Of a DNA stretch of 64,000 nucleotides, positions 461 through 38,162 are shown piece by piece. A model generated the notes under the pieces. That model was not told the DNA's origin. It ran no database searches and saw nothing but the letters and a program-made list of their open reading frames with translations. The position numbers and the translations under genes were made by a program. The DNA is taken from sequence record KY555144.1. One strand, written 5' to 3'. Position 1 is the stretch's first letter, and each line of letters begins with the position of its first letter.

Positions 461-518
461 GGCCTCCTTGTTGTCGTCGAGGATGGCTTCTAGCCGGCCC
501 AGGTCAGGTTGTCAACAC
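461..518 (-). promoter_or_regulatory. sigma70-type promoter with CTCGACGACAAC leader and RBS
   Basis: minus strand GTGTTGACA-N15-GCTAGAAG..CCTCGACGACAACAAGGAGG-ATG. Confidence 0.8.
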
Positions 519-832
519 TCGACAGCCAAGTAGACGTTGCGGCGCGGCTCATAGGGGAGATCGTTGGCGATCGCCATCAGCCAGCCGGCGTGGCAGCGCT
601 TGGGAGCGCAGTGACAGACGAGATGAAAGCCCCTGTAGTTGGCCTTGACCCAGGCGACGAACGCCTCATCCTTGGACCTCAGGGCGATGTACTTGTCGAT
701 CACCGTGTCGCGATCGCCATCCTGACCGATGCGGAACTCATTGCCCGCCGGGGTCCCCCGGCCGACGTACTTGGACATCGGCGGGAGATGGCCTGGGAAC
801 TCGCTTCGGCTGAGAACGCGCAGTTCGATCAT
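512..832 (-). CDS. DUF4326 family protein
   Basis: YVGRGTPAGNEF...LVCHCAPKRCH motif typical of DUF4326. Confidence 0.8.
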   Translation of the reverse strand: MIELRVLSRSEFPGHLPPMSKYVGRGTPAGNEFRIGQDGDRDTVIDKYIALRSKDEAFVAWVKANYRGFHLVCHCAPKRCHAGWLMAIANDLPYEPRRNVYLAVEC

Positions 833-1473
833 GCCGCCCGGCTCTCCACGTAGTCGGCGAGGATCGCCAGGGTGTCCTCGGCCGAGGTATGGAGGATCGA
901 GAAGCCCCCAGCCCGATTCCAGGCCACGCAGTTGGCGACGCGGTCGTCGATCAGGATTTGGTGGTCGGAGTGCTTGCGGTGCATGAACTCCTGCTTCTTG
1001 GCCGAGGTCGTGCAGATGAAGCGGTGGTCCTCGATCCGGATGCGATCGGGCACCATGCCGGCCACGGCCTCGTCCCCAGAGAACATCTCGGCGAACGCCT
1101 GGGGCAGAAGCGTCTCCTCGATCCAGCGCCGCTTGCCATAGGCCGCGCCCAGCCAGTAGGGATGGATCAGGAAGTCCTCGTCCGTCGCCCCGAACTTGGG
1201 CGAGGCGGTCAGGATGATTGGATCGGCCTCGAACACCGCCGTGTAGAGGTCCACCGCGCCCGGCATGAACGGCAGGGTCTCGAAGAAGTTCGTGCCCTCG
1301 ATCTTGCGATACATCCCCTGCTTCCAGAGGTTGGCTTCGTCGTCCATCGCGTGGCTCGACTTGTTGTACTCGGGATCAGGCTCGAACCCGAGCCGGCGGA
1401 TGCCCTCGTCGAAATCGGCCAGGACGCCGTCCATGTCGAGATAGATGGCGAAGTTCTTCAGGTTCATGGTCAC
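829..1473 (-). CDS. HAD-superfamily 5'(3')-deoxyribonucleotidase-like protein
   Basis: IYLDMDGVLADF motif I and LIDD motif IV. Confidence 0.85.
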   Translation of the reverse strand: MTMNLKNFAIYLDMDGVLADFDEGIRRLGFEPDPEYNKSSHAMDDEANLWKQGMYRKIEGTNFFETLPFMPGAVDLYTAVFEADPIILTASPKFGATDEDFLIHPYWLGAAYGKRRWIEETLLPQAFAEMFSGDEAVAGMVPDRIRIEDHRFICTTSAKKQEFMHRKHSDHQILIDDRVANCVAWNRAGGFSILHTSAEDTLAILADYVESRAA

Positions 1474-1670
1474 TCCGGGAATTGCGCGTGCAGCCCCATG
1501 GCGATGCGCGCCAGTTCGTAGGCGGTCTTGGTCTCCAACTCGCGGGTCGGCGTGCGCTCTATCTTGAGTTGGTCGCTCATCATGTGGATGGCGTGGATGA
1601 TGTCGCTCTTGCGCCTCTTCTCGTAGTAGCGGTGCGACGCGGTGGCGCGGATTTCGACGATCGCCATCAC
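1470..1670 (-). CDS. hypothetical protein
   Basis: 4-bp overlaps with both neighbours. Confidence 0.75.
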   Translation of the reverse strand: MMAIVEIRATASHRYYEKRRKSDIIHAIHMMSDQLKIERTPTRELETKTAYELARIAMGLHAQFPE

Positions 1671-2035
1671 AGGGCTCCCGCGCAGGCCAGGGCCATCGCC
1701 CAGCCGCGCTCGGTCGGCTCGAAGCGGGCGATCGGCCCCTTGACGTTCGGATCGTCGGAGAAATGCGGGTCGAGCCAGCCCTTGTTGGCGTGGATCACCT
1801 CGTCGAGCGAGCGCGCCTCGTAGACCAGGATTTTGCGGCCCTCGTAGTTGAGGGCGTCGGGGTACATGATCTCGACCACCGTGCAGCGGCCGACCTCCTG
1901 GCCCCGGATGAGCTTCCAGCGCGCCGGGTCGGGATCGCCCGGCGTCAGCGTCACGGGAGACTGCCCGCCGGAGAAAAGCCGCATCTTGCTGGGTTCGCGC
2001 GCCGAACGGCCGGTCGAGAACAATCGCATCCCCAC
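1667..2035 (-). CDS. hypothetical protein
   Basis: fits operon packing; LDPHF..GPIARFEPTERGW core. Confidence 0.8.
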   Translation of the reverse strand: MGMRLFSTGRSAREPSKMRLFSGGQSPVTLTPGDPDPARWKLIRGQEVGRCTVVEIMYPDALNYEGRKILVYEARSLDEVIHANKGWLDPHFSDDPNVKGPIARFEPTERGWAMALACAGAL

Positions 2036-2036
2036 C

Positions 2037-2423
2037 CTAGTCTCCCAGGCCCTGCATGGCGTTGTCGCGGCTGTCCTCGGCGTCGGGCCGGGACGCCAGG
2101 GCCGCCAGAAGGTCGACCGAGAGGTGGCGGTTGTAGATCGCCACGCCCTTATACTTGAAAAGCTCGCTGGCTTCGTGGATCAGAGCCCGCTCGACCGCCG
2201 CCCAGGCCGTCTGGACGATCTCGGTGTCGGTGGCGTAGTAGGAGAGCTTCCACTTGCGCCCCTTCCACATCTCCGGCTCGCCGGTGACGGTGTTAATCCC
2301 ATCCTTACAGACGATCTGGAGCCAGACCTCGGTGCGGCCGGTCTCAAGCCGGAACTCGAAACCAGGATAGCTCAGACGGTCGACGATGGTGCGGATCGAT
2401 TGGGCGCTGCGACGATTCGCCAT
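2037..2423 (-). CDS. conserved hypothetical phage protein
   Basis: WKGRKWKLS...EIVQTAWAA..HEASELFKYKG; operon packing. Confidence 0.8.
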   Translation of the reverse strand: MANRRSAQSIRTIVDRLSYPGFEFRLETGRTEVWLQIVCKDGINTVTGEPEMWKGRKWKLSYYATDTEIVQTAWAAVERALIHEASELFKYKGVAIYNRHLSVDLLAALASRPDAEDSRDNAMQGLGD

Positions 2424-2425
2424 GC

Positions 2426-2887: not shown

Positions 2888-3143
2888 AGGTGATCCTATA
2901 CGGGAGCCCGCCGACGCAGATTTTCCCGCGTCGGCCGTCGGCGGTGGTGAAGCGGAAGCCCTGGCGGCTCTTGGCGCCGGCGCAGGACCACCATGCGCGG
3001 TGAAAGCTGACGACCTCGGCGCCGGTGTCACGCTCGACCAGATGTCGAGCGTGACGCCCCTCCCAGGTGTAGGCCCAGACCCCGATGGCGAAGAAGACCA
3101 GAGTCAGGGAGCCATAGACGGCCCCTTTGACATAGTCCTCCAT
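2874..3143 (-). CDS. small membrane protein
   Basis: N-terminal hydrophobic helix GAVYGSLTLVFFAIGVWAY. Confidence 0.75.
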   Translation of the reverse strand: MEDYVKGAVYGSLTLVFFAIGVWAYTWEGRHARHLVERDTGAEVVSFHRAWWSCAGAKSRQGFRFTTADGRRGKICVGGLPYRITYGRD

Positions 3144-3520
3144 CAGGCCGCCACGAGCCCGGTGATCACGTCGGTGACGATGCGACGCTTCTCGGCCGGC
3201 ATGCCCGCCAGCGCCAGGATCGTCTTGGCGCCGATCTCGGCGACGGCGGTCTCGACGTCGGCCCGGCCGTCGGTCAGGAACGCCGGATCGTCGACCGGAG
3301 GATAGAAGTGCCCGATGTCCTTCTTCAGGAACTGGGCCGCCTCATAGAGCTTCGAGGACGAGATGCGGTTGTGCCCGCGCTCGTACTTCTGGACCTGCTG
3401 GAAGGTCACGCCGATCGCCTCGGCGAGTTGGCCTTGCGAGAAGCCGGCCGTCTTGCGGGTGTCGCGCAGCTTGCGTCCCACATAGACGTCGACGGGGTGC
3501 GGGGTCTTGTCGTCAGCCAT
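3143..3520 (-). CDS. tgrL: XRE-family HTH transcription factor (Caulobacter Rtr/Cdx-type; likely TgrL homolog)
   Basis: PHPVDVYVGRKLR...SQGQLAEAIGVTFQQVQKYERGHNRIS is the alphaproteobacterial XRE signature; start trimmed to ATG 3520; symbol rests on recalled phiCbK literature and was not aligned. Confidence 0.85.
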   Translation of the reverse strand: MADDKTPHPVDVYVGRKLRDTRKTAGFSQGQLAEAIGVTFQQVQKYERGHNRISSSKLYEAAQFLKKDIGHFYPPVDDPAFLTDGRADVETAVAEIGAKTILALAGMPAEKRRIVTDVITGLVAA

Positions 3521-4499: not shown

Positions 4500-4780
4500 C
4501 AGGCGACGCCCTGGGCGATTTCGTAGGTGATCTTCGAGACGCCAATATCGACCACGAACCGGTCGGGCGAGCCGTCGAACACGTAGTTGGCCTGACACCC
4601 GATCGGCATCATCTTGCCGTTGTCCATCCAGATCGCGTCCGGCGTGGCCTCGACCACGCCGCGCACCTGCGCCTGGGCCGGGGAAGGTTGCATCTCCACG
4701 CCGCCCACGGTGATCGCCACGGCCGCGAGACGCGCGCCCGGCTGGTTCAACTTGGCGATCAGGTCCTGGATCGAGTTCAC
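4499..4780 (-). CDS. hypothetical protein
   Basis: GTG 4780 after AAGGAGG and a promoter. Confidence 0.75.
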   Translation of the reverse strand: MNSIQDLIAKLNQPGARLAAVAITVGGVEMQPSPAQAQVRGVVEATPDAIWMDNGKMMPIGCQANYVFDGSPDRFVVDIGVSKITYEIAQGVA

Positions 4781-4782
4781 GC

Positions 4783-4843
4783 GGCCTCCTTCTGTCGTTG
4801 TGTCGACATAAGCTCTAGCCGTGGTTTTCCGGCCTGTCAACAC
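4783..4843 (-). promoter_or_regulatory. sigma70-type promoter with variant leader
   Basis: minus strand GTGTTGACA-N15-GCTAGAG..GTCGACACAACGACAGAAGGAGG. Confidence 0.75.
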
Positions 4844-4859
4844 ACAACCGCCAAGGGTC

Positions 4860-4891: not shown

Positions 4892-4917
4892 CATGACAGA
4901 GCATGTCAGGAGGGACG

Positions 4918-7463: not shown

Positions 7464-7705
7464 GGCTCGACCTTCCGGACAGTGTAGGATAATTCGTCGT
7501 GGACGCGACCGTCGAAACTAGCCTCGTAGCCGGGGCCGAGTTCGGCCAGGATGCGCGCCTCGATCTCGGCGAAGTCGATTTTCGCCATCGCCTGTTCGGC
7601 CGCCCGCATCTGCTGGAGGAAGCCGTCCTTGATCTGGCGCCCCGCCTCGGTGCGGATCGGGATGTTCTGGATCGGCGGCTCGGATTTCGACAGACGCTCG
7701 CCCAT
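7460..7705 (-). CDS. hypothetical protein
   Basis: overlap-coupled to gcrA. Confidence 0.7.
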   Translation of the reverse strand: MGERLSKSEPPIQNIPIRTEAGRQIKDGFLQQMRAAEQAMAKIDFAEIEARILAELGPGYEASFDGRVHDELSYTVRKVEP

Positions 7706-8253
7706 CAGGCCCTCCGGCGATAGACCCGCACCGGGCGGGTGGGGAGGCGTTTCTCAGGCGGCTTGTAGGCGACCAGGGCATGGCTGATGCAGTAGACGCC
7801 CGCCTCGGCGCGGCATCCGCAATGGCCAAAGTCCGGCGAGTTCGGGTCGCCATAGGGCCAGCGGCACATTCCGCGCTTGAGTTCGGCCGTCGCGAACAGC
7901 CGCGCCGGGCGCGGCGGGATGACCGCCGTCCCTTCAGGGACCAGGGCGAGCTTAGGCTTGGCCGGCGGAGCGGGCTTTTCGACCTTCTTGGGCTTACGCG
8001 CCGTGGCCTTCTTGACCTTGCGGACCTGGATGCCCAGGCCGCGCGTCTTCTTGCGGCGGGCGGTCGGAGGCGGAACCTTCTCGCCCAGTTCGCCGGCGGC
8101 CTTCAGTCGGTCGGCCTTGCCGCAGACGGCGCTCTTGGTGCGCGGCACGCTCAGGCGCTGACCGATCTCCTTGGTCCCGACCGGCTCCGCCCAGAGCTTC
8201 TTGAGCAGGGCGATGTCCTCGTCCGGCCAGTCGGAATTCCGCTTCTTCACCAC
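7705..8253 (-). CDS. gcrA: GcrA cell-cycle regulator homolog
   Basis: N-terminal WPDEDIALLKKLW..EIGQRL..TKSAVCGKADRL and C-terminal CRWPYGDP..FGHCG...YCISHALVAY. Confidence 0.92.
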   Translation of the reverse strand: MVKKRNSDWPDEDIALLKKLWAEPVGTKEIGQRLSVPRTKSAVCGKADRLKAAGELGEKVPPPTARRKKTRGLGIQVRKVKKATARKPKKVEKPAPPAKPKLALVPEGTAVIPPRPARLFATAELKRGMCRWPYGDPNSPDFGHCGCRAEAGVYCISHALVAYKPPEKRLPTRPVRVYRRRA

Positions 8254-8462: not shown

Positions 8463-8490
8463 CCCTAGAGGAGCGTTCGAGTGTTGACAA
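8463..8490 (-). promoter_or_regulatory. leftward promoter of the gcrA arm
   Basis: minus strand TTGTCA-N14-CTCTAGGG, 22 bp upstream of the ATG at 8440. Confidence 0.6.
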
Positions 8491-8513
8491 GCACCAATGT
8501 CGCTGGCTTTCGA

Positions 8514-8570
8514 GTGTTGACAAGTCCGGTGCTCGTCTATAGGGGAGACCGGGACGACAACGAAAGGAGC
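8514..8570 (+). promoter_or_regulatory. rightward sigma70-type promoter with GACGACAAC leader
   Basis: GTGTTGACAAG..CTATAGG..GGACGACAACGAAAGGAG. Confidence 0.8.
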
Positions 8571-8575
8571 CTGCC

Positions 8576-8884
8576 ATGCGCTATGTGCTCGACTATGCCG
8601 ACGACCGGGACAAGCCGGTCTACACCGATTTCCAGGCCGGCGACCGCAAGGCGGCCATCGCCAAGGCCAAGCGCCTGCTCGCCAAGGCGATCAAGACCGT
8701 CGATTTCTCGCTCCACGGGGCCTACATCTTCGTCGATCCGACGGGCGTCGCCCGCGACGTCGACGACATGATCCCGTTCGGGATGCTGAGCACGATGGCC
8801 TACGCCAGCATCATCACCCCGTCGATGATCTCGTTCGACGACCGCGACGCCAAGGCGGCGATCGCCGCGAGGCTCGTCCAATGA
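8576..8884 (+). CDS. hypothetical protein
   Basis: AAGGAG RBS; first gene of the rightward arm. Confidence 0.85.
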   Translation: MRYVLDYADDRDKPVYTDFQAGDRKAAIAKAKRLLAKAIKTVDFSLHGAYIFVDPTGVARDVDDMIPFGMLSTMAYASIITPSMISFDDRDAKAAIAARLVQ

Positions 8885-10498: not shown

Positions 10499-10753
10499 AT
10501 GCTGACCAAGGACGAGATCACCTTCGCGGGCCTGATCAAGGCCATGGAGGACGCCCGACGCACCGCCAAGGCGGCGGGCGATCTCGTCAGCACGGCCGAG
10601 ATCGCCCGCTGGTTCAAGGAACACGCGCCGATCATCCGGGAGGTCCGCGACAAGGCCGAGGCTGACGAATTCGACGCTGGCGCGAGAGTGTTGACAACCT
10701 CTGAGGAAGGGGCTAAAGACACCCTCGACGACAGCGAAAGGAGCCTGCCTTGA
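10499..10753 (+). CDS. hypothetical protein
   Basis: operon packing; 3' end overlaps a promoter cassette. Confidence 0.7.
   Translation: MLTKDEITFAGLIKAMEDARRTAKAAGDLVSTAEIARWFKEHAPIIREVRDKAEADEFDAGARVLTTSEEGAKDTLDDSERSLP
10688..10744 (+). promoter_or_regulatory. sigma70-type promoter with leader
   Basis: GTGTTGACAACC..GGCTAAAG..CCTCGACGACAGCGAAAGGAG. Confidence 0.8.
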
Positions 10754-13803: not shown

Positions 13804-13821
13804 GTCTTTCCTGGCGTGAAA

Positions 13822-13877
13822 GTGTTGACAGCCTGAAGGGACTCCTCTACACCCACGCTCGACGACAACGAGAGGAG
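13822..13877 (+). promoter_or_regulatory. sigma70-type promoter with leader
   Basis: GTGTTGACAG..CTCTACAC..CTCGACGACAACGAGAGGAG; GANTC sites at 13802 and 13840. Confidence 0.8.
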
Positions 13878-13882
13878 TTCCC

Positions 13883-15652
13883 ATGGCCGAGACCATGACC
13901 CTGAGTTTCCGGATCGAAGGCGCCGCCCTGGTGGAGCGGGCGCGCGATCGTGTCATCGAAGGTAACTGGGAGCACGGCCTGCGCATCCTGGTCGAGGGCC
14001 TGCACGGCATGTCCTACGAACTCGCGATCGACATCCTGCTCGGCAAGCACACCCTGGGCGGCTGGTCCTCGGACCCCGAAGGCGTCTATCTCACCGACCA
14101 GGACCCGGAGGACGAGACTTTCAAGCGTTACAAGAAAACCCTCGACTACCAGTTCGCCGGCGTCTTCAAGCTGGAGGATGGCCGGATCATGCGTCCCTAC
14201 GCCGTGGTCGACAGCTTCTCCAAGATCGACTTCGACTCCAGGGTCCGCTTCCTGCGGCTGGCCCAGGGCTCGGACCCGGTGTTCTCGCGCCCCAAGCGCT
14301 ATCACGACACCCGCGCCGAGATCAACGGCGAGGAGATCGACTGGGCCTATCGCGCCCTGCACTACGCCGACGAGCCGACCCAGGACATCGTCCGTCTGGT
14401 CCGTATGGAGGGCTTCCATCCCACGATCCGAGCGGCGGTCCTGTTCAAGGAAGTCCGCGACTATCCCAAGCTCCTACTTCCGAAGGTCGAGACCGACGCC
14501 CAGAAGGCCGTCGATGTGGCGATCAAGGCCCAGCGCGGCCTCTCCAAGCGCGGGCACGTCTACGAGTACGGCGCTGGTCAGGACTTCGACAAGGAGCACT
14601 ACAAGACCACCATGGGGATCGATCAGGTCCCCACCGCCTGGACCGTGCGCAACCCGAAATACGTCGAGCCGAGCGTCGAGATCGCCCTGGCCGAGGCCAA
14701 CAAGGTCTCCGCCGTCAAGGCGATCGAAGCCGCTGGCGGTTCGATGGATCATGCCGGCGCCATGAACCGGATGGTCAAGGACGAGATGGACGGTGGCATG
14801 GACATCAGCACGGCCGTCGCCATGACCCAGGCCAAGATGGCGCTGCTGGGCGGCATGGCCGAGGACCCCGAGCAGCGCCTGCGGGCGATCAACGACGCCT
14901 ACGCCGCCAAGTACGAGAAGGCCGAGGGCCGCAGCGTCGAGGAGTACCGCAAGGCCATCATCGCCCAAGCTGGCGATGACTTCTTCGATCTCGCGTACAC
15001 GGATGTGGACGGCAAGGAGGTCGTCCTGAAGGTCCCGACCGCGCCGTTCGAGCAATGGGCTCTGTGGCGCACCGCCGGCGCCCACCTCGCCAAGCCCTGG
15101 AAGCGGGTGACCTACACCGGCTTCAAGACGTTCGGCGATGATCCCTATCACACCGACTGGGTGCTGGGCGCGGGGCTCAACCCCGAGGACTGGCCGATCA
15201 TCGAGGCCGACAACCCGCCGCTCCACAAGGCCGCCTGGGAAAAGCGCTTCCGGCTGGCCGAGGAGAAGCTGGGCGGCAACATGCGCGTCCTGCTCGGCAA
15301 GGGTTACGTGACCGGCAAGATCGTGATGCTCAAGCCGGGCGAGGCCCTGTCTCCGGGCGAGATCGGCGTGATCCGCAACGCCGGCCCTGACTATGTCCAG
15401 GCCGCCCAGAGCGCCATCGAGCACAACTCCGCCTTGATCTGCGAGAACGGCGGCAGCGTCGCCCACCTCGTGGTCGAGTATCTGGACAAGCCCCTGCGTC
15501 TGGCGCGGATCGAGAACGCCCGCAAGATTTTCAAGGACGGCATGACCGTCTACCTCGACTTCGACAAGTCCACGCGCGAGATCGGCAAGGGAAGCCTTGG
15601 CCCGAGCCCGGCGGACCTTGGACTCGACACGCAATGGGAGATTTTCGAATGA
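13883..15652 (+). CDS. 589-aa protein with C-terminal PEP-utilising-enzyme mobile (phosphohistidine swivel) domain
   Basis: GYVTGKIV..GEIGVIRNAGPDY..ALICENGGSVAHLVV..IFKDGMTVYLD resembles the PEP-utiliser mobile domain; His528 retained. Confidence 0.8.
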   Translation: MAETMTLSFRIEGAALVERARDRVIEGNWEHGLRILVEGLHGMSYELAIDILLGKHTLGGWSSDPEGVYLTDQDPEDETFKRYKKTLDYQFAGVFKLEDGRIMRPYAVVDSFSKIDFDSRVRFLRLAQGSDPVFSRPKRYHDTRAEINGEEIDWAYRALHYADEPTQDIVRLVRMEGFHPTIRAAVLFKEVRDYPKLLLPKVETDAQKAVDVAIKAQRGLSKRGHVYEYGAGQDFDKEHYKTTMGIDQVPTAWTVRNPKYVEPSVEIALAEANKVSAVKAIEAAGGSMDHAGAMNRMVKDEMDGGMDISTAVAMTQAKMALLGGMAEDPEQRLRAINDAYAAKYEKAEGRSVEEYRKAIIAQAGDDFFDLAYTDVDGKEVVLKVPTAPFEQWALWRTAGAHLAKPWKRVTYTGFKTFGDDPYHTDWVLGAGLNPEDWPIIEADNPPLHKAAWEKRFRLAEEKLGGNMRVLLGKGYVTGKIVMLKPGEALSPGEIGVIRNAGPDYVQAAQSAIEHNSALICENGGSVAHLVVEYLDKPLRLARIENARKIFKDGMTVYLDFDKSTREIGKGSLGPSPADLGLDTQWEIFE

Positions 15653-17610: not shown

Positions 17611-17663
17611 GTTGACAACACTCTCGCGCCAACATAGAAGGGTCCTCGACGACAACGAGGAGG
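17611..17663 (+). promoter_or_regulatory. sigma70-type promoter cassette (46 bp identical to 34272)
   Basis: TTGACAACACTCTCGCGCCAACATAGAAGGGTCCTCGACGACAACG-AGGAGG. Confidence 0.85.
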
Positions 17664-17668
17664 CTTCG

Positions 17669-19111: not shown

Positions 19112-19124
19112 TCCTGGCGTTCTT

Positions 19125-19180
19125 GTGTTGACAAGGCCGGCGGCGCTGGCCTAGAACGTCGTGGACGACAACAGGAGGGA
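19125..19180 (+). promoter_or_regulatory. sigma70-type promoter with leader
   Basis: GTGTTGACAAG..CCTAGAAC..GGACGACAACAGGAGG. Confidence 0.8.
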
Positions 19181-19182
19181 CC

Positions 19183-26450: not shown

Positions 26451-26469
26451 ATTTTGTTGGCGCGAGAAC

Positions 26470-26522
26470 GTTGACAGCCTCGGCGTGGTGTCATAAAAGC
26501 CTCCTCGACGACAACGAGGAGG
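26470..26522 (+). promoter_or_regulatory. sigma70-type promoter with leader
   Basis: GTTGACAG..TCATAAAA..CCTCGACGACAACGAGGAGG. Confidence 0.8.
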
Positions 26523-26527
26523 CCCCC

Positions 26528-26947
26528 ATGGCTTACGCAATTCCGGACCTGAGCACCTACACGTTCCACGACCCCAAGGTCGAACGGTTCGCCAAGGCGA
26601 TGATCTCGACGATCGAGACCGCCCAGACCATGCTCACGGCCTTCGCCAACGATCTCGCCGACAATCCTCTTCAGGCGTTCGAGCATAGCTACGGCGCCAA
26701 GATGGCCGCCGCCCACAGGGACGTCGCCAAGGGGCTGCTCAACGAGGTTCTCGACGCGCTGCTGCATGGTCAGGACAAGACCTGGGCCTACATCGGCCAG
26801 GACCTGCGCGAGCGGCTGATGTATCGCGTGATCTACGCGGCCTCGAACCCGCCGCGCTCGACCAACGCCGAGAGCAACGACATGGCCCGCTTCGTCCTGC
26901 GCGCCGAGGCCGACATGCTCGACCGCATGACCAAGAGCCGCTTCTGA
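26528..26947 (+). CDS. hypothetical protein
   Basis: start trimmed to the ATG after GAGGAGG. Confidence 0.8.
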   Translation: MAYAIPDLSTYTFHDPKVERFAKAMISTIETAQTMLTAFANDLADNPLQAFEHSYGAKMAAAHRDVAKGLLNEVLDALLHGQDKTWAYIGQDLRERLMYRVIYAASNPPRSTNAESNDMARFVLRAEADMLDRMTKSRF

Positions 26948-27859: not shown

Positions 27860-27870
27860 TTGGCGTTTAA

Positions 27871-27923
27871 GTGTTGCCAAAGCCGAGGCACTCGGCTAGA
27901 ACACGCCCGACGACAACGAGGAG
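27871..27923 (+). promoter_or_regulatory. sigma70-type promoter with leader (TTGCCA variant)
   Basis: GTGTTGCCAA..GGCTAGAAC..CCGACGACAACGAGGAGG. Confidence 0.75.
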
Positions 27924-27928
27924 GCCCC

Positions 27929-28135
27929 ATGCCACACTTGAGCCAGCAGCCCTTCACCTTCGACTTCACCAGCGACGCCCTGCGCGCGGCGCTCGAAATC
28001 GAAAAGGGCGCCACCGAATCCTACCGCTACGAGACGATCTTCGTCTTCAACACCGAGCGCGAGATCATCGGGACCCAGGTCCGCGTCATGGACGAGGAGG
28101 GCTTTTTCGAGGCCTACGTGGCGGGGGAAGCCTGA
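27929..28135 (+). CDS. hypothetical protein
   Basis: start trimmed to the ATG after GAGGAGG. Confidence 0.75.
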   Translation: MPHLSQQPFTFDFTSDALRAALEIEKGATESYRYETIFVFNTEREIIGTQVRVMDEEGFFEAYVAGEA

Positions 28136-29056: not shown

Positions 29057-29082
29057 TCGTCGCCAGCCCGGCTGGCTTCAGT

Positions 29083-29115
29083 GTGTTGACGGCGCGTCGA
29101 TCGCCCGCTAAGAAG
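29083..29115 (+). promoter_or_regulatory. sigma70-type promoter without leader
   Basis: GTGTTGACG-N15-GCTAAGAA. Confidence 0.7.
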
Positions 29116-29172
29116 GGCTGACGGTCACGCTCTGGCTGCATGAATTTTCAATCCGAAAGGGGCCTTAAGTCC

Positions 29173-31203
29173 ATGGATTTCCACGTCTTTAAGACGGCCG
29201 TCGCCAAGCAGTGGGCCGCGATGACCAAGGATGACGCGACCCTGTTCCGCGTCGACGTCGACAAGGACCTCCTGTGGTCGACCTATCTGGGGGCGTTCCC
29301 GGCCGGAACCGACCCGATCTTCCGCGAGCGCTCCGAGCACGACTGCTCGTGCTGCCGCAACTTCATCCGCAACGCCGGCGACGCCGTGGCGGTGGTGAAC
29401 GGTCAGATCGTGACGATCTGGGATGGCAAGATCGAGGGCGAGCCGGCCTACCAGCAGGTCGCCGCCACCCTGGCGGCCCTGGTCCGCTCGCGCCCGGTGC
29501 GCGACATCTTCCTGCACGACCAGAAGACCATCGGGACCGACAAGAACGTCGAGACCATGCTGGGCGGCGACGTCACCTGGAACCACTTCTTCGTCAATGT
29601 CCCCTCGCGCTTCGTCAAGAAGGGCAAGGACATCCCGACCGCGCTCCACATCCCGCGCACCGCGCAGGAGACGCTCCTGCGCGCCGTGACCGAGATCACC
29701 GACGAGGCGATCGACACGGTGCTGGACCTGATCGCCCAGAACGCGCTCTATCGCGGGGCCGAACACAAGTCGGCGGTGGTGGCGTTCCAGAAGGCCAAGA
29801 AGACCTTCGAGGGCCTGTCGGCCGCCGACAAGGCGCTGAAGGCCTGGGTCAACGTCACCAATGGGGAAATCTGGGGCTCGGTCTCGGGCATCCGGAGCAC
29901 GGTGATCGGCTCGCTGCTGGTCGACCTGTCGGCTGACGTCGACCTGGAGGACGCGGTCAAGAAGTTCGAGGCCAAGGTCGCGCCGCACAACTACAAGCGC
30001 ACGACCGCCCTGGTGACCAAGAAGCAGATCGAAAACGCCAAGAAGACGATCTCCGACCTCGGCCTGACCTCGGCCCTGGAACGGCGCTACGCCGTCCTCA
30101 AGGACGTGTCGATCAACGACGTGCTGTTCGCCGACCGCGACGCCAAGTCGGTGATGAACGACGTCTTCGACGATCTGGCCGCCGACGTCGCCGAGAAGAC
30201 CAAGTCCTACGACAAGATCGAGGAGGTCTCGATCGACAAGTTCCTGTCCGACATTCTCCCGAGGGTGTCGAGCGTCGAGGCCCTGGTCGAGAACCGCCTG
30301 ACGAGCAATTTCGTCAGCCTGATCGCGCCGGTCGATCCGACCGCCGGCTCCCTCTTCAAGTGGGGGAACAACTTCTCCTGGTCCTATGCCGGGGAGGTGG
30401 CAGACTCGATCAAGGCCCGCGTCAAGGCGGCCGGCGGCAACGTCACCGGCGATCTCTGCTGCCGTCTGGCGTGGTTCAACTATGACGACCTCGACTTCCA
30501 CATGAAGGAACCGGGCGGCAACCTGATCTACTTCCGCCAGAAGTCCTCGCCCTACACGGGCGGGCGCCTCGACGTCGACATGAACGCCGGTGGGGGCCAT
30601 ACCCGCGAGCCGGTCGAGAACATCTTCTACGGCGACCGCCGGACGATGAAGGAAGGCGTCTACGAACTGATGGTCCATCAGTACAGCAAGCGCGAGTCCA
30701 GCAACGTCGGCTTCGAGGTGGAGATCGACTACCTGGGCTCGGTCACCCGCTACGCCTACACCACGGCCCTGCGCCAGGAGCAGGTCGTCAAGGTGGCGCA
30801 GTTCAAGTACAGCCACGCGCGCGGCATCGAGTTCATCTCCTCGCTCCCGGCCTCGTCGGCGAGCAAGGACGTCTGGGGCGTGAAGACCGAGACCTTCCGC
30901 AGGGTCAACGTCATCATGCTCTCGCCCAACCACTGGGAAGGCGAGCCGGGCGTGGGGAACAAGCACTGGTTCTTCATGCTGGACGGAGGCGTCAACGAGG
31001 ACGGCGCCCGTGGCTTCTACAACGAGTTCCTGAAGGATAGCCTCACGCCCCACCGTCGCGTCTTCGAGATGCTGGGGTCCAAGCTGAAGCCCGCGCCGGC
31101 GACTGAACAACTCTCCGGCCTGGGCTTCTCCTCGACCAAGCGCGACGAACTCGTCGTGCGCGTCAAGGGGGCCTTCACGCGTACCCTCAAGATCAAATTC
31201 TAA
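29173..31203 (+). CDS. large conserved phage protein with HDCSCC motif and DUF2135/YfaP-like segment
   Basis: start trimmed to ATG 29173 after AAAGGGG; LAWFNYDDLDFHMKEPGG..LDVDMN..PVENI. Confidence 0.85.
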   Translation: MDFHVFKTAVAKQWAAMTKDDATLFRVDVDKDLLWSTYLGAFPAGTDPIFRERSEHDCSCCRNFIRNAGDAVAVVNGQIVTIWDGKIEGEPAYQQVAATLAALVRSRPVRDIFLHDQKTIGTDKNVETMLGGDVTWNHFFVNVPSRFVKKGKDIPTALHIPRTAQETLLRAVTEITDEAIDTVLDLIAQNALYRGAEHKSAVVAFQKAKKTFEGLSAADKALKAWVNVTNGEIWGSVSGIRSTVIGSLLVDLSADVDLEDAVKKFEAKVAPHNYKRTTALVTKKQIENAKKTISDLGLTSALERRYAVLKDVSINDVLFADRDAKSVMNDVFDDLAADVAEKTKSYDKIEEVSIDKFLSDILPRVSSVEALVENRLTSNFVSLIAPVDPTAGSLFKWGNNFSWSYAGEVADSIKARVKAAGGNVTGDLCCRLAWFNYDDLDFHMKEPGGNLIYFRQKSSPYTGGRLDVDMNAGGGHTREPVENIFYGDRRTMKEGVYELMVHQYSKRESSNVGFEVEIDYLGSVTRYAYTTALRQEQVVKVAQFKYSHARGIEFISSLPASSASKDVWGVKTETFRRVNVIMLSPNHWEGEPGVGNKHWFFMLDGGVNEDGARGFYNEFLKDSLTPHRRVFEMLGSKLKPAPATEQLSGLGFSSTKRDELVVRVKGAFTRTLKIKF

Positions 31204-31670: not shown

Positions 31671-31724
31671 CTTGACAACACTCTCGCGCCAACATAGAAG
31701 GGCCTCCGACGACAACGCCGGAGG
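31671..31724 (+). promoter_or_regulatory. sigma70-type promoter cassette (43/46 identical to 17612 and 34272)
   Basis: TTGACAACACTCTCGCGCCAACATAGAAGGGCCTCCGACGACAACG. Confidence 0.85.
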
Positions 31725-31732
31725 CCCTTTTC

Positions 31733-32041
31733 ATGACCGAGATTAGCTGCACCACGCCGGTTCCGAATAATCCGCGCTACGTGATTGTTACCGTCGATGG
31801 TCGGAAATATCGTTTCTCAGCGGCTGAGCGACGCCGACGCGGCGATGTCGTGATCAACTATGTGCTCGGAAGTCGAAAGGGCAAATGGGGCCAGTCGACC
31901 GATTGGGTCTCCCTGCCCCAAGGCCCCAAGCGCCGGACGGTGGTCTCCTCGGCCGCCGAGTTTCTCGCTTCGTCCCCAGACATTCCGGCTGAAGAACAGT
32001 CGGTCTGGGCCGGAGTCGCCTTTGCGAACCTCGCCCAATGA
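31733..32041 (+). CDS. hypothetical protein
   Basis: GGAGG RBS; more AT-rich codons than its neighbours. Confidence 0.7.
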   Translation: MTEISCTTPVPNNPRYVIVTVDGRKYRFSAAERRRRGDVVINYVLGSRKGKWGQSTDWVSLPQGPKRRTVVSSAAEFLASSPDIPAEEQSVWAGVAFANLAQ

Positions 32042-33998: not shown

Positions 33999-34297
33999 GC
34001 GACCACGACGCCTGCCTGACCAACTGGGTCCTCTGCGACGCGCCCGGCGGCGGGCTGGTGGTGATCGGCGAGATCATGGCCGACAAGCGCGGGCGCTGGC
34101 CGGACGGGCGGCTCATCCACACCTCGCTCCTCCAGGTCAAGGCCGAGGCGGTGGCGCCGGGCGCGGTGGTCGCCACGCTCAACTCCCGCTACATCCTGGG
34201 GCGCAAGGCCGAGGAGATCACCGTCCGTCACTTCGTCGGGGCGATGCTCGCCCGCGTCGCGATCAGACCGCTTGACAACACTCTCGCGCCAACATAG
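33995..34297 (+). CDS. conserved hypothetical phage protein
   Basis: RWPDGRLIHTS..TLNSRYILG motif. Confidence 0.75.
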   Translation: MSDHDACLTNWVLCDAPGGGLVVIGEIMADKRGRWPDGRLIHTSLLQVKAEAVAPGAVVATLNSRYILGRKAEEITVRHFVGAMLARVAIRPLDNTLAPT

Positions 34298-34317
34298 AAG
34301 GGTCCTCGACGACAACG
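34271..34317 (+). promoter_or_regulatory. sigma70-type promoter cassette (46 bp identical to 17612)
   Basis: TTGACAACACTCTCGCGCCAACATAGAAGGGTCCTCGACGACAACG. Confidence 0.85.
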
Positions 34318-34364
34318 GCTGTCCGAAATTTGTAGACGGATTTCGGACATAGAGGAGCACCCCG

Positions 34365-34748
34365 ATGGCCCAGCGCCTGAAGATCAAGGAAGTCGTGGTG
34401 GCGCAGCAGGACGCTGTCTACCACTGGCGTGGCGAGGAAGGCGACGAGTATCAGGTCATGAGCCTCGTCCACGTCCAGACCCTGGACGGCCGCTGGTTCC
34501 TGATGCCGGCCATGCGCCCCTACACCCGCGCCGAGGAGGCCGCGTTCGACGAGGCCTGCGGCGAAATCCTGTTCGGGATGAAGACCCGCTACTCGGACCC
34601 GCAGGCCTTCGCCGCCATCGTTCGCGCCGCCGGCTCGATCGATCCTGATCTGTGGGTCGAGTATCAGCCCGACACCCGCACCCTGGAAGAGAAGTTCCAC
34701 GACGACTGGGTCGAGGAACAGTTCGACCGCCAACGCTTCGCCGCCTGA
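34365..34748 (+). CDS. hypothetical protein
   Basis: AGAGGAG RBS. Confidence 0.8.
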   Translation: MAQRLKIKEVVVAQQDAVYHWRGEEGDEYQVMSLVHVQTLDGRWFLMPAMRPYTRAEEAAFDEACGEILFGMKTRYSDPQAFAAIVRAAGSIDPDLWVEYQPDTRTLEEKFHDDWVEEQFDRQRFAA

Positions 34749-34759
34749 GGAGGACCCCG

Positions 34760-35840: not shown

Positions 35841-35848
35841 GAGGTCCC

Positions 35849-36226: not shown

Positions 36227-36240
36227 GACAAGGAGGTCCC

Positions 36241-36729: not shown

Positions 36730-36743
36730 GCGTTGGCTCCGAT

Positions 36744-36798
36744 GTGTTGACAAGAAGCGGCGGCCTCCTGTAGAAGCATCCTCGACGACAACAGGAGG
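36744..36798 (+). promoter_or_regulatory. sigma70-type promoter with leader
   Basis: GTGTTGACAAG..TGTAGAAG..CCTCGACGACAACAGGAGG. Confidence 0.8.
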
Positions 36799-36805
36799 CC
36801 CCGCC

Positions 36806-37300
36806 TTGACCGACACCACCGCGCCCGGAACCCAGTTTGAAGACGCCGTCACCCTCGGCGTCGAGATCATCCAGACCAAGCCGCCGCACCTGACCGCCCG
36901 TGAGGCGGTCGAGAAGTTCCAGCACCAGCCGGACGAGTTCCGCCTGCTGGTGACCCGCTTCAACAAGGCGACCGCCGCCTTGCCAGCGGTGGTCCACGGC
37001 CACCAGTTGCAGTCGACCTGCGCCAAGTGGGTGCTCGACTCGGCCCAGCGGTTGATCGACCTGCCGTTCGAGACAATCGAGCAGCGCGTGGCGTTCTACG
37101 CCAAGCAGATGACGCTCCCGGCCTACGGCTACCTGATGGATCGCTACAAGGACCGGCTCGACGCCAAGATCGCCATCGTCCGGGCCTGCCTGGAAGACCG
37201 CGACCATGTCGGGGCCAGCTATAACCTCGGCATCCTGGAAGAGGACTTCCAGGAGATGGTCGACCGCCATGACGATCTGGTCTCGGACGGCTACCCCTGA
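36806..37300 (+). CDS. hypothetical protein
   Basis: TTG after AGGAGG. Confidence 0.8.
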   Translation: MTDTTAPGTQFEDAVTLGVEIIQTKPPHLTAREAVEKFQHQPDEFRLLVTRFNKATAALPAVVHGHQLQSTCAKWVLDSAQRLIDLPFETIEQRVAFYAKQMTLPAYGYLMDRYKDRLDAKIAIVRACLEDRDHVGASYNLGILEEDFQEMVDRHDDLVSDGYP

Positions 37301-37372
37301 TGGGCGCTTGCAGCCGTCACAACTCCGGCCTAGCTTCCTCGCGCCGCACTGATGCGGTCATGAGGATTCGAA

Positions 37373-37633
37373 ATGGACAGGCTGAAAGTCAAACTCTTCG
37401 CCAAGGGGATTCATACCTCGGCCGAGGCCCTGGTCGATGCGATCGCGGCGCTCCCCGAGGGTCCGGAGAAGGATGCGGTGGTCGCGGCCGAACAGCAGCT
37501 TCATGCCCGCCTCAACTGGGGCGCGGCGAAGGCCGGCGAGTTCTTCGGGGACGAGTCGATCTCGCTCCTGGCGCGCCGCCGCACCGGCGGCGAGGACAAG
37601 CCGGACGCTCCGGAAGTTCCGCCCGGCGGCTGA
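37373..37633 (+). CDS. hypothetical protein
   Basis: GAGGA RBS. Confidence 0.7.
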   Translation: MDRLKVKLFAKGIHTSAEALVDAIAALPEGPEKDAVVAAEQQLHARLNWGAAKAGEFFGDESISLLARRRTGGEDKPDAPEVPPGG

Positions 37634-37643
37634 CGGGTGCGTC

Positions 37644-38138
37644 ATGGGCCTGACGGGCTGCGCCTTCGCAGTCCTGACGGCCGGCTCGGTCGCCTATGCG
37701 ATCGACCGTGGCGGCAAGGCGCTGAAGCTCAGCGCCTTCCTGCTGCTGGCGTCCTGGGCGTTCTCGGTCACCCTGGGGCAGACCCTGCACGCGGGCATGA
37801 AGCCCTATGTCTATGCCTGGGTCGACGCCCTGTTCGCCGGCGCGATGGGGATATTGATCTCCGCCCGGCTCCAGCGCTGGCGGGTCGCCCTCTTCACCCT
37901 GGCGATCGCCCAGATGGGCCTCCACCTGATCATGATCGGGGGCTGGGATTTCTCGCTGCACGCGCGGCGCCTCCACGTCCTGGCCCTCAACCTGACCTAC
38001 GGCCTGGAACTCTTCGTCCTGACGATCGGGGCGGCGACCTATCGCGTCGAGGTCGAGGACGACATGCCGGCGCTGATCGAGGCTGACGGTCCCGGCTGGC
38101 TTGAATGTGTTGACAAAGCCAGAGAGCCCGTCCTATAA
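37644..38138 (+). CDS. multi-pass membrane protein
   Basis: about five hydrophobic helices; start trimmed to ATG 37644. Confidence 0.75.
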   Translation: MGLTGCAFAVLTAGSVAYAIDRGGKALKLSAFLLLASWAFSVTLGQTLHAGMKPYVYAWVDALFAGAMGILISARLQRWRVALFTLAIAQMGLHLIMIGGWDFSLHARRLHVLALNLTYGLELFVLTIGAATYRVEVEDDMPALIEADGPGWLECVDKAREPVL

Positions 38139-38162
38139 GCTCCCTCGACGACAACGAGGAGG
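38107..38162 (+). promoter_or_regulatory. sigma70-type promoter with leader
   Basis: GTGTTGACAAA..CCTATAAG..CCTCGACGACAACGAGGAGG. Confidence 0.8.

Follow-up and report, generated by a model that had tools for sequence, protein, structure and literature searches.

A promoter-borne leader tag in phiCbK-like Caulobacter phages and a putative antisense RNA that co-varies with it

The DNA analyzed here (the window) is the last 64 kb of the genome of Ccr5 (KY555144.1), a phiCbK-like jumbo siphovirus that infects Caulobacter. It carries 13 promoter cassettes of common layout, in which GTG-TTGACA, generally with a TGGC block upstream, is followed by a spacer of 17 to 18 bp and a (GC)TAGAAG-like −10 (13/13), and in which a short sequence, GACGACAAC or a variant of it (the tag), precedes a strong Shine-Dalgarno (SD) sequence, with a UTR that is typically 19 to 25 nt long. 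The cassettes are as follows.

455–528, minus strand: gp210c cassette; TGGC block at 528, −35 at 515, GACGACAAC at 478–470, SD, ATG at 457; 21-nt UTR
4778–4853, minus strand: degenerate gp220c cassette; TGGC block at 4853, −35 at 4840, permuted tag GACACAACGACAG, GTG at 4780
8504–8578, plus strand: gp226 cassette, first of the plus arm; tag at 8553–8561, ATG at 8576
10678–10752, plus strand: gp234 cassette; variant tag GACGACAGC at 10727–10735, TTG start at 10750
13812–13885, plus strand: gp240 cassette; tag at 13861–13869, ATG at 13883
17612–17671, plus strand: gp246 "alt" cassette, without the upstream TGGC block; tag at 17648–17656, ATG at 17669
19115–19185, plus strand: cassette of gp250 (DUF7717 protein); tag at 19164–19172, ATG at 19183
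26458–26530, plus strand: gp267 cassette; tag at 26507–26515, ATG at 26528
27861–27931, plus strand: gp271 cassette; −35 TTGCCA, tag at 27909–27917, ATG at 27929
31672–31735, plus strand: "alt" cassette near gp277; tag at 31708–31716, SD, ATG at 31733
34272–34367, plus strand: gp283 "alt" cassette; tag at 34308–34316, 57-nt UTR with a hairpin, then SD, ATG at 34365
36734–36808, plus strand: gp289 cassette; tag at 36784–36792, TTG at 36806
38097–38170, plus strand: gp292 cassette, last of the array; tag at 38147–38155, ATG at 38168

The ATG at 31733 opens a 102-aa reading frame that begins before the start annotated for gp277, at 31850. For gp226 the −35 block is duplicated, the second one being located 33 bp upstream, at 8484. 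Eleven exact copies of GACGACAAC occur in the window against 0.48 expected, a number reached in none of 100 shuffles; a longer form, CTCGACGACAAC, is exact in seven copies. The whole genome holds 19 exact copies and about five degenerate ones beyond these. Eighteen of the 19 belong to promoter cassettes, which lie between 114 and 193 kb of the genome on both arms of a divergent block. All 13 sites listed in a preliminary description of this DNA exist, 11 with the exact tag; the one placed near 4783 is present on the minus strand, with its −35 at 4840 and the tag permuted. The array reaches past the range first given for it.

Exact copies in cassettes lie 35 to 37 bp past the −35 (18 of 19 genome-wide; 11 of 11 in the window, counted from the T of TTGACA, or of TTGCCA in one case), in line with the distance of about 36 bp proposed earlier. 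This distance is set by the promoter and not by the ribosome-binding site, as the 57-nt UTR of copy 34308 makes plain. With a spacer of 17 bp and a −10 of the TAGAAG type, the tag has its G 8 to 9 nt past the −10, in the context Y(−1)R(+1), and does sit at the predicted +1, as the preliminary description held, the start itself being only a prediction. At 13.8 bits the tag is more informative than either promoter hexamer, the −35 having 10.8 bits and the −10 having 3.6. The −10 is TAGAAG-like yet variable (TATAGG, TAAAGA, TACACC and TAAAAG occur), and for this reason the form CTAGA initially given for it holds for some copies only. The TGGC[GT]-N5-GTG block conserved upstream of the −35 had escaped notice, as had the tag's fixed distance from the promoter rather than the ribosome-binding site and its high information content, and the spacer of the gp246 "alt" cassette, ACACTCTCGCGCCA, is an inverted TGGC block.

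Caulobacter sigma-70 (sigma-73) promoters reportedly carry, according to Malakooti and Ely in 1995, −35 TTGACGS and −10 GCTANAWC with the hexamers 16 to 18 bp apart, and the cassettes satisfy the −35/−10 requirements of this housekeeping class, which starts transcription 6 to 9 nt past the −10. Three other promoter classes were rejected: sigma-54 (TGGCAC-N5-TTGCW), because the TGGC-to-TTG spacing is 2 bp too long; CtrA, because the cassettes contain no TTAA-N7-TTAAC; and GcrA/CcrM-dependent promoters, because they contain no GANTC. GANTC occurs instead in a second promoter family (GTCGTGAATC-TTGACA). A search of 185,579 bacterial genomes found the composite cassette pattern at chance level, with none in Caulobacter; it is not a host feature. 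Four further promoters of the window lack the tag, as previously stated, and do not form one class.

29073–29175, plus strand: gp275 promoter of the same family, TGGCT-N5-GTG-TTGACG (29086), TAAGAA and a leader of about 60 nt
44832–44871, plus strand: GTG-TTGACA-N18-TAGACC leading directly into GGAGG, ATG at 44869
46337: TTGACG site
48245–48290, plus strand: second-family promoter, GTCGTGAATC-TTGACA (48255), with a GANTC methylation site abutting the −35

The gp275 promoter serves as an internal control and demonstrates that the tag is not needed for the promoter architecture. Together with the untagged promoter of the small RNA described below, it upholds the earlier view that the tag is not simply part of the promoter.

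The same features bear on whether the tag is an initial-transcribed or discriminator element that governs start-site choice or promoter escape, joined to an unstructured, CA-rich standby leader, with any antisense copy a coincidence. Such an element would be fixed relative to the −10 rather than the SD and would be open, and the tag is fixed in this way and is predicted to be unpaired in the leaders; however, it exceeds the −35 in information content, and the −10 by a wide margin, is missing from promoters of the same family and is absent from host-type genomes. A second possibility is that the repeats are chiefly recombination cassettes resembling the T4 PeSL, whose identity reflects recent spread or homogenization with no shared reader. 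They do flank ORFan-type genes in a variable region, over which relatives align in two to five pieces, and four copies (17612, 31672 and 34272 in the window and 149386 in the genome) have an identical 17-bp spacer. Most copies, however, combine unrelated spacers with an invariant tag, both within Ccr5 and between Ccr5 and Rogue, in which the orthologue of the gp240 cassette keeps all conserved blocks while the spacer has diverged. Terminator-like hairpins in the array (9 and 7 versus 10.4 expected by chance) were in no case associated with a cassette, leaving no upstream stem-loop or terminator component above chance. Membership of the T4-type PeSL was rejected on the ground that no terminator-like stem-loop is joined to the early promoter. 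Nor would homogenization create a co-varying antisense partner, and we regard recombination as an extremely improbable explanation of the repeats, although a role in it could coexist with the small RNA proposed here.

The only copy of GACGACAAC that is not part of a tagged promoter cassette lies outside the window, at 52.3 kb of the genome, in antisense orientation. It occupies a non-coding gap, where a promoter of the cassette type precedes it and a terminator follows, and marks a putative, unannotated small RNA (sRNA) gene.

KY555144.1 52,283–52,378: predicted sRNA gene of about 96 nt, between the tRNA cluster and phoH
NC_019405.1 52,957–53,054: its counterpart in phiCbK

The predicted unit has an untagged promoter of early type. 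Its RNA would begin with a hairpin at the 5′ end, continue into an open linker and finish at an intrinsic terminator, which comprises a 10-bp hairpin and a U-rich tail. The linker, CUUCUGC-GUUGUCGUC, is the exact antisense of the tag, a match expected by chance in a given 96-nt RNA with a probability of about 3e-4. The predicted fold is stable (z = −4.9) and leaves the seed exposed, with a probability of being unpaired of 0.89 compared with 0.28 for the remainder in Ccr5; across the five RNAs folded, from four lineages, the seed values are 0.89, 0.66, 0.66, 0.52 and 0.46. The unit is found in 26 of 26 phiCbK-like genomes. Among six genomes from two genera the linker is invariant at an overall identity of about 75% and is unpaired in the consensus fold; hairpin 1 carries a compensatory change among relatives. 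Relatives differ by indels of 1 and 4 nt, which disrupt any reading frame, and the records of phiCbK, Swift and Colossus have orphan terminators annotated at this spot. No Rfam family matched the sRNA. The gene has the marks of a base-pairing sRNA, being an independent non-coding unit with a predicted promoter and terminator and having a conserved single-stranded seed. Sequence analysis establishes its anatomy, conservation and predicted fold, and its expression is only inferred.

The sRNA is predicted to form 10 contiguous Watson-Crick pairs with the leaders from mRNA +1, followed by G-U pairs through the SD. Predicted duplexes that begin at +1 and span the SD have energies of −19 to −31 kcal/mol (−25.5 kcal/mol for the gp210c leader with the linker), although raw duplex energies are not unique in a genome of 66% GC. 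In the variant tag GACGACAGC of gp234, the A-to-G change retains a G-U pair with the seed.

Three further lineages, Colossus, Kabachok and Bajun, have a syntenic sRNA with a different linker. The Colossus linker is CCUCC-UGAUCGUCA, and the matching leader tag, TGACGATCA, occurs 24 times in that genome against 1.2 expected, mostly at leaders. In Kabachok, of which 50 kb were examined, the leader was predicted blind as TTGACGACG..GGAGGACC, and the prediction was met: the linker is GGUCCUCC-GUCGUC and the leaders read GACGACG…GGAGGACC. Bajun has the linker GGUCUCC and leaders with GGAGACC. The 7-mers found de novo to be enriched after the −10 in Ccr5 and Colossus are complementary only to the sRNA of the same phage. 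In a 4 × 4 matrix the 5′ UTRs of each phage pair best with their own linker, the correct assignment of phages to linkers ranking 1 of 24, and a table of tags by genome has 43 of 51 counts on its diagonal. The bases flanking the SD also track the linker across lineages. In CcrSC there is no sRNA at the syntenic site, the sole site checked, and no tag in the 50 kb examined, where leaders start with CA-rich CAAC or CATC at the tag position. Because the leaders within one genome are paralogous, per-leader p-values overstate independence, and the truly independent units are the four to five lineages. Bajun is the weakest case. Its tag zone fits its own seed no better than the Ccr5 seed, four to six of its leaders retain GACGACAAC with no second partner for it in the Bajun genome, and its specificity is confined to the SD-flank zone. 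With this reservation for the Bajun tag zone, the complementarity lies at or near the ribosome-binding site and is accompanied by compensatory change in seed and target. The comparison establishes matched changes of predicted seed and leader in four lineages and the absence of both, within the limits given for CcrSC, in a fifth.

These changes weigh on each remaining alternative. A discriminator could account for the ACGAC-type core at +1 common to four lineages and two host genera and for the CA-rich opening of CcrSC leaders at the same position. It is nevertheless unlikely, since Ccr5 and Colossus infect the same host and have different tags, each matching its own sRNA, and since the SD-flank bases, which polymerase does not read, follow the linker too. 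The tag could also be an RNA operator for a phage protein, either a RegA-like translational repressor or a RegB-like nuclease. The T4 protein factors do recognize translation-initiation regions of many early mRNAs (PMC3014915), and the early block contains numerous genes for small proteins of unknown function. We consider this very unlikely, because a protein reader predicts no conserved, co-varying exact complement within a folded non-coding unit; nor did any candidate RNA-binding protein emerge. Finally, a phage repressor, for example the early XRE protein TgrL (gp218c), might bind the tag as a DNA operator and turn off the early promoters. Repressors classically bind at the start site, and the tag extends over the predicted one. 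An early XRE regulator (3143–3520) and a GcrA homologue are encoded in the window (PMC10688885), and a CCTCG...CGAGG inverted repeat surrounds the tag in several copies. Yet the 9-mer lacks dyad symmetry, the flanking repeat is missing where the SD is distant from the tag or abuts it (34308 and 19164), a protein would more plausibly bind the TGGC block, and the matched change of SD flank and RNA linker is left unexplained, making a DNA operator highly improbable.

We therefore favor as the probable explanation that a phage sRNA base-pairs with early mRNAs over their 5′ end and SD, most likely shutting them off, while acknowledging that the transcription start sites, the expression of the sRNA and whether it represses its targets or instead protects or activates them are inferred from sequence and not shown. 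Each early cassette promoter would be read by the host housekeeping sigma-70-type RNA polymerase, with the predicted start of transcription on the G of GACGACAAC or on the nucleotide that precedes it. With a start at this G, about 23 early operon mRNAs of Ccr5, 13 of them in the window, would share the same open 5′ tag of 9 to 10 nt, followed by the SD. The tag and SD together may form the docking site of the trans-acting sRNA of about 96 nt, most likely with the result that ribosome binding is blocked, 5′-end-dependent decay is altered, or both, and accumulation of a stable sRNA would shut off the early regulon together. Published RNA-seq has phiCbK early genes peaking by 15 min and declining afterwards (PMC10688885; dataset GSE241057). 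Occlusion of the SD cannot be the mechanism at copy 34308, where the SD lies about 45 nt from the tag. Moreover, with one sRNA gene facing about 23 target promoters, stoichiometric repression needs an sRNA that is far stabler or more strongly transcribed. The preliminary description had postulated a 5′ mRNA tag that marks one regulon and is read by a phage factor, for which an antisense sRNA co-varying with the tag is now the candidate, its expression and the start being predicted; among the mechanisms it entertained, the evidence favors pairing at the RNA level over antitermination or a DNA-binding repressor. We found no description in the literature of the tag or leader or of the antisense sRNA. 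More tentatively, and somewhat less likely than not, a single anti-leader sRNA may read a 5′-terminal RNA "postcode" in the promoter cassette and act as a global timer of the whole early regulon. Seed and postcode would then co-evolve, giving each phage lineage a private address, and if this is true, such addresses could provide interference or insulation at the RNA level between related co-infecting phages.

Shut-off of T4 early promoters has been described as not completely understood (PMC3014915), and little is understood of how large lytic phages other than T4 silence their early genes. The discovery of phage-encoded sRNAs has just begun, and those known act mostly on host genes; one sRNA set against about 23 identically tagged operons would be a regulon-scale RNA-based temporal switch. 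The specificity of sRNA and tag can be read from sequence and is conserved yet re-coded in at least four lineages of the Dolichocephalovirinae and two host genera. Since phiCbK is in standard use among Caulobacter cell biologists and its genetics are good, every step is directly testable. The annotation of more than 30 phage genomes can be extended by a hitherto unannotated gene, that of the putative sRNA, early operons and true start codons (e.g., gp277) can be defined, and the tag and sRNA could supply an orthogonal pair for synthetic control in alphaproteobacteria.

Phage antisense RNAs that pair with the ribosome-binding region and block translation include c4 of P1/P7, sar of P22 and OOP of lambda. 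Citron and Schuster are said to have described the c4 RNA in Cell in 1990, with P1 and P7 showing matched changes in RNA and target, much as the phage lineages do here. The c4, sar and OOP RNAs each act on one operon in temperate-phage immunity, whereas Ccr5 is a lytic jumbo phage and its sRNA would face about 23 operon leaders at dispersed sites. Processing of the same transcript yields c4, while the Ccr5 sRNA is predicted to be separately transcribed. The T4-type PeSL (PMC2839356, PMC4122927) resemble the Ccr5 array in placing dozens of strong sigma-70-type early promoter cassettes before ORFan genes in a plastic part of the genome, and both are possible recombination substrates. In the PeSL a promoter is joined to a terminator stem-loop and no transcribed tag is conserved, whereas the Ccr5 cassettes lack a stem-loop but carry a TGGC block upstream and an invariant tag at +1. 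RegB and RegA of T4 resemble in function the proposal made here, being early phage factors that inactivate many early mRNAs at translation-initiation regions and sharpen the early-to-middle transition, the RegB endoribonuclease targeting the GGAG of the SD itself (PMC3014915). In T4 the readers are proteins, which recognize A/U-rich sequence or GGAG only loosely, whereas the proposed Ccr5 reader is an RNA with an exact 10-nt seed, and the Ccr5 targets, unlike those of T4, carry a dedicated 5′-terminal tag built into the promoter cassette. In predicted gene architecture (own promoter, structured 5′ part, single-stranded conserved seed and U-tail terminator) the Ccr5 sRNA matches Hfq-type sRNAs and LPR1/PreS of lambda (bioRxiv 10.1101/2024.10.31.621285), which also pair at or near the SD, as proposed for Ccr5. 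Bacterial sRNA regulons have heterogeneous target sites, however, whereas those of Ccr5 are near-identical and lie at the extreme 5′ end, and known phage sRNAs act mainly on host genes or on a single phage gene, whereas the Ccr5 sRNA would act on the early operons of the phage itself.

The window matches the last 64 kb of the Ccr5 record (KY555144.1, 218,729 bp) at 100% identity, and a window coordinate is the genome coordinate minus 154,729; genome-wide counts were made on the full genome put together from the annotated record. Ccr5 is a phiCbK-like jumbo siphovirus of the genus Shapirovirus, subfamily Dolichocephalovirinae. The window carries a long run of small genes, nearly all annotated as hypothetical, with leftward genes to about position 8,440 and rightward genes from 8,576. 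The left arm of this early block includes:

7705-8253, minus strand: GcrA homologue
3143-3520, minus strand: Cro/CI-type regulator, orthologue of phiCbK TgrL

The 9-mer GACGACAAC, hereafter the tag, occurs 11 times in the window against 0.48 expected, a count that shuffled sequences come nowhere near, and each of the 11 copies lies 35-37 bp downstream of TTGACA, measured from the -35 T. The whole genome holds 19 exact copies, 18 of them in promoter context and spanning genome 114-193 kb on both arms of the divergent block, together with about five degenerate tags. The preliminary description listed 13 tagged sites in the window, of which 11 carry the exact 9-mer and the remaining two only degenerate forms:

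10727: degenerate tag GACGACAGC
behind the -35 at 4840, minus strand: permuted tag GACACAACGACAG

The promoter-plus-leader cassette that it proposed is real but larger than described, since it also includes TGGC[GT]-N5-GTG upstream of the -35; in full it reads TGGC[GT]-N5-GTG-TTGACA-N17-TAGAAG-like-N3-CCTC-GACGACAAC-(0-5 nt)-GAGGAGG-N5-7-start codon. Four "alt" cassettes (window 17612, 31672 and 34272; genome 149386) have the tag without the upstream TGGC block and share one identical spacer. At the divergence point of the early arms (window 8484-8522), a block TTCGAGTGTTGACAAG stands in tandem duplicate, 33 bp apart, with a usable -10 and tag in the second copy only. At another site, the cassette SD and an ATG at 31733 open a 102-aa ORF (window 31733-32041); the record starts gp277 at 31850, which is probably too far downstream.

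The G of the tag is the eighth or ninth base past the -10 (17-bp spacer) and follows pyrimidines, the expected place for a purine start, which bears out the earlier placement of the motif near the predicted +1. The distance from tag to promoter varies by only ±1 bp, whereas the gap from tag to SD ranges from 0 to 5 nt and reaches about 45 nt, with a hairpin between, in the copy at 34308; the tag is therefore part of the transcription start, as far as starts can be predicted, and not of the RBS. In the predicted UTRs, 19-25 nt in length, the tag is unpaired (P 0.8-0.97). Nor is the tag simply a piece of promoter, as the preliminary description had also held, for tagless promoters of the same architecture exist, such as that at window 29086. 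Its information content (13.8 bits) exceeds that of the -35 hexamer (10.8) and far exceeds that of the -10 (3.6). Spacers are unrelated among most Ccr5 copies and between Ccr5 and Rogue, an approximately 79% identical phage that keeps 16 strict copies despite this divergence, which reflects selection on the tag and not recent copying. The composite cassette pattern (-35, distance, tag and SD) belongs to the phage and not to host promoters: a search of 185,579 bacterial species, with one genome for each, gave 41 scattered single matches, roughly the chance level by our own estimate, and none in Caulobacter. Metagenomic viral matches outside the phiCbK group came to five distinct ones, also about chance level.

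Two readings of the tag were set aside. The CCTC...GAGG complementarity that flanks it is genuine in several copies and would provide an SD-sequestering hairpin, but the predicted +1 falls downstream of the 5′ arm, and the hairpin is missing in the copies at 19164 and 34308, so that it could matter in read-through transcripts only. Pairing with UGUCGUC of 16S rRNA helix 34, judged on the conserved sequence and not on a host rRNA, was dropped because the match is only 7 nt long and about what chance would give in a 1.5-kb rRNA.

The sole 9-mer outside the cassettes in Ccr5, at genome 52,326-52,334, reads GTTGTCGTC on the plus strand and is the exact antisense of the tag. It sits in a non-coding gap with the tRNA cluster on one side and the genes upstream of phoH on the other, behind a cassette-type promoter that lacks a tag (TGGCG-N5-GTG-TTGACA-N17-TAAAAC; predicted start G52,283). 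The predicted sRNA comprises, 5′ to 3′, a GC-rich hairpin, a linker of about 26 nt containing CUUCUGC-GUUGUCGUC, a 10-bp hairpin and UCGUUUCGUUUU. As a 96-98-nt RNA it folds much better than shuffled sequences (z=-4.9), and the antisense seed in the linker is its most accessible part (P unpaired 0.89 versus 0.28 elsewhere); an antisense 9-mer would fall in a given RNA of this size with a chance of about 3e-4. No Rfam family matches it. The unit was found in 26 of 26 phiCbK-like genomes, and the phiCbK and Swift records mark its 3′ end with an orphan rho-independent terminator annotated by the depositors. An alignment of six genomes from two genera, about 75% identical between extremes, shows an invariant linker TCTG-CGTTGTCGTCAG beside a scrambled promoter spacer, and a compensatory change in the inner stem (GGACC/GGTCC to GGGCC/GGCCC to GGGGCC/GGCCCC); its indels of 1 and 4 nt are incompatible with a conserved reading frame.

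Predicted duplexes between sRNA and leaders begin exactly at the predicted +1 and comprise 10 contiguous Watson-Crick pairs (GACGACAACG with CGUUGUCGUC) followed by G-U pairs through the SD, with energies of -19 to -31 kcal/mol. A genome-wide scan for targets by duplex energy was rejected as evidence, its background being too high and such energies not unique at 66% GC. Since energies do not discriminate in such a genome, we relied instead on exact-seed, cross-lineage and de novo k-mer tests.

Colossus, a phage of the same host but a different genus, has an unannotated sRNA unit at the syntenic place, in the order tRNA-Arg, early-type promoter, hairpin and linker, annotated orphan terminator, small genes and phoH; CcrPW carries a copy 98% identical to it. 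The Colossus linker is CCUCC-UGAUCGUCAAG, and the corresponding tag TGACGATCA occurs 24 times against 1.2 expected, with at least 15 copies lying 7 nt past the -10, just before the SD and start codon. Because TGACGATCA stands both on a GAGAG-TTGACAG type and on a second early type, CTTG[AC]N-N12-TTTCTTTACA-N7-TGACGATCA, with a weak -35 and a long conserved -10 region, the tag is common to two promoter architectures. Examples of the second type are:

NC_019406.1 223926, 224793, 225444, 233309: second-type Colossus promoters
NC_019406.1 248971, 262520, 263924, 270008, minus strand: second-type Colossus promoters

When 7-mers enriched right after the -10 were sought de novo, the top ones in Ccr5 were complementary to the Ccr5 sRNA only, and three of the four top ones in Colossus to the Colossus sRNA only. 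A syntenic RNA is also present in two Brevundimonas phage lineages, Kabachok (linker GGUCCUCC-GUCGUCAAG) and Bajun (linker GGUCUCCUUUCAUCC-GUCGUCAG). A search with the GcrA protein for early regions in distant phages returned phiCbK-like phages only; those of Bajun, Kabachok and CcrSC were located by gene-order extrapolation, Kabachok being represented by a 50-kb stretch alone. Its leaders were predicted from the linker to read TTGACGACG..GGAGGACC, and exactly that form was then found in the stretch, GGAGGACC occurring in 5 of 11 Kabachok leaders against 0-1 in the other phages. Bajun leaders have the SD context GGAGACC, which matches their own linker, and the base after the ACGAC core is G in about half of them, where the Bajun seed has C; Ccr5 leaders have A there in every case, and the Ccr5 seed U. 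In a four-by-four matrix the 5′ UTRs of each phage pair most strongly with their own linker, the correct assignment ranking 1 of 24, and a promoter-independent table of tags by genomes places 43 of 51 counts on the diagonal. Leaders within a genome are paralogues, so independent evidence comes from four or five lineages and not from dozens of leaders.

The correspondence is weakest in Bajun, where the tag zone fits the seeds of Ccr5 and Bajun equally well. Between four and six Bajun leaders retain GACGACAAC, and no second antisense partner for these was found in the Bajun genome. A sense GACGACAAC that could be a decoy or sponge lies in a non-coding stretch just upstream of the Bajun sRNA promoter (ON529858.1 138,527-138,535; L102:1143-1151); the equivalent stretch of about 320 nt in Ccr5 (L003:1912-2230) is non-coding and has no Rfam match. 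In CcrSC (Bertelyvirus), which served as the negative control, the syntenic site holds no sRNA, only a terminator after tRNA-Phe, and no GACGA-type tag was seen in the early leaders in the part of the genome examined. Bertelyvirus early promoters (CcrSC NC_048048.2 202068-246732) have their own upstream block, CT[AG]C[AG]AGAAA[AT]CTG-TTGACA, and leaders beginning CAAC or CATC; CAACGA, mildly enriched, resembles the 3′ half of the Ccr5 tag.

The TGGC block is an element separate from the tag: the sRNA promoter and the tagless promoter 29086 have it too, and it is conserved in Bajun (TTCTTGGCGCGAGAGTG-TTGACA). The spacer of the alt cassettes, ACACTCTCGCGCCA, is the reverse complement of the regular upstream block TGGCGCGAGAGTGT, so that the same 14-bp element precedes the -35 in regular cassettes and lies inverted between -35 and -10 in the four alt ones:

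17618-17631, 31678-31691, 34278-34291 (window) and 149386 (genome, minus strand): inverted block ACACTCTCGCGCCA
10678-10690, 26458-26470 (window): examples of upstream block TGGCGCGAGAGTGT

This inversion suggests, from sequence alone, a putative protein-binding half-site whose reader is unknown. A sigma-54 reading of the block was rejected, the spacing being off by 2 bp, as was control of the cassette by GcrA/CcrM or CtrA, the cassette having neither GANTC nor TTAA-N7-TTAAC.

A second conserved promoter family, GTCGTGAATC-TTGACA (GCCAGGAATC-TTGACA in Colossus), stands ahead of structural and other non-early genes, never with the tag, and a GANTC CcrM methylation site abuts its -35:

Ccr5, window 48245-48260; genome 25402, 30393, 33140, 52416, 54072, 71133, 93332 (minus strand), 115455
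Colossus, 38521, 41872, 42962, 73556, 92857, 99496
Bajun, 114303, 143194

As the early block encodes a GcrA homologue and the host's own GcrA is an activator of methylated sigma-70 promoters (PMC4647560), this family may be a GcrA-dependent middle or late class. Directly upstream of the untagged promoter 44832, a 19-nt palindrome ACAACCGTTTTTGGTTGTA occurs in two exact copies 29 bp apart (window 44773-44820), and similar ACAACC...GGTTGT repeats are seen in Colossus around position 1,000. A non-coding gap upstream of the terminase region holds an AT-rich island of about 160 nt (window 47687-47844; genome 65% GC); the island contains three copies, two direct and one inverted, of a 30-40-nt element (…ATACAATGCTA…ATGTTAAT) and might serve as an origin or as a packaging or regulatory site. 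Four copies of a repeated unit have TTGCCC-N17-TAGAGG and, after it, a CtrA-box-like TTAAC-N6-TTA[AC]C, which agrees with a report that CtrA sites are concentrated in the terminal repeats of phiCbK-like phages (PMC9437464):

57667, 59072, 60240, 62599 (window), minus strand: TTGCCC/CtrA-box-like units in the right terminal repeat, with identical copies in the left repeat

We propose that a trans-acting sRNA would bind each early operon mRNA at its very 5′ terminus and extend over the SD, repressing translation with or without faster decay. Transcribed from the same type of promoter as its targets and predicted to be stable, it would bring about a delayed, coordinated shut-off, which fits published data in which about 41% of phiCbK genes reach their maximum by 15 min and fall afterwards (PMC10688885). 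Repression is the most likely outcome because the predicted pairing covers the SD, although sRNA expression and mRNA starts have not been shown. Protection of the 5′ end, and hence stabilisation, cannot be excluded, and it suits the copy at 34308 better, given the long distance between tag and SD there. That the sRNA and tag pair functionally we hold to be probable, a judgment drawn from comparison of genomes without evidence for sRNA production; repression as the direction of the effect is held with less confidence. The preliminary inference that a phage factor reads a 5′ mRNA tag is thus supported and sharpened, the candidate reader being an antisense sRNA that covaries with the tag across lineages.

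We found no description of phiCbK promoters, transcription starts or sRNAs in the literature; in Gill et al. 2012, promoters come up only once, in a different context. T4-type PeSLs resemble the Ccr5 array in being repeated early-promoter cassettes ahead of ORFans (PMC2839356, PMC4122927), but the array lacks their defining stem-loop and they lack a transcribed tag. The recently described lambda sRNA has host genes as targets (10.1101/2024.10.31.621285). Functionally, the proposed sRNA resembles T4 RegB and RegA, which are likewise encoded by the phage and act on the translation-initiation regions of many early mRNAs to inactivate them (PMC3014915), except that the T4 readers are proteins. Mechanistically, it resembles both Hfq-type sRNAs and phage antisense RNAs of the c4 kind. 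Between phages P1 and P7, the c4 RNA and its target likewise show matched differences, but these RNAs act on one operon. What we rate as new here, with sRNA expression still to be shown, is the application of sRNA regulation to a phage's own early regulon by means of a built-in 5′ tag.
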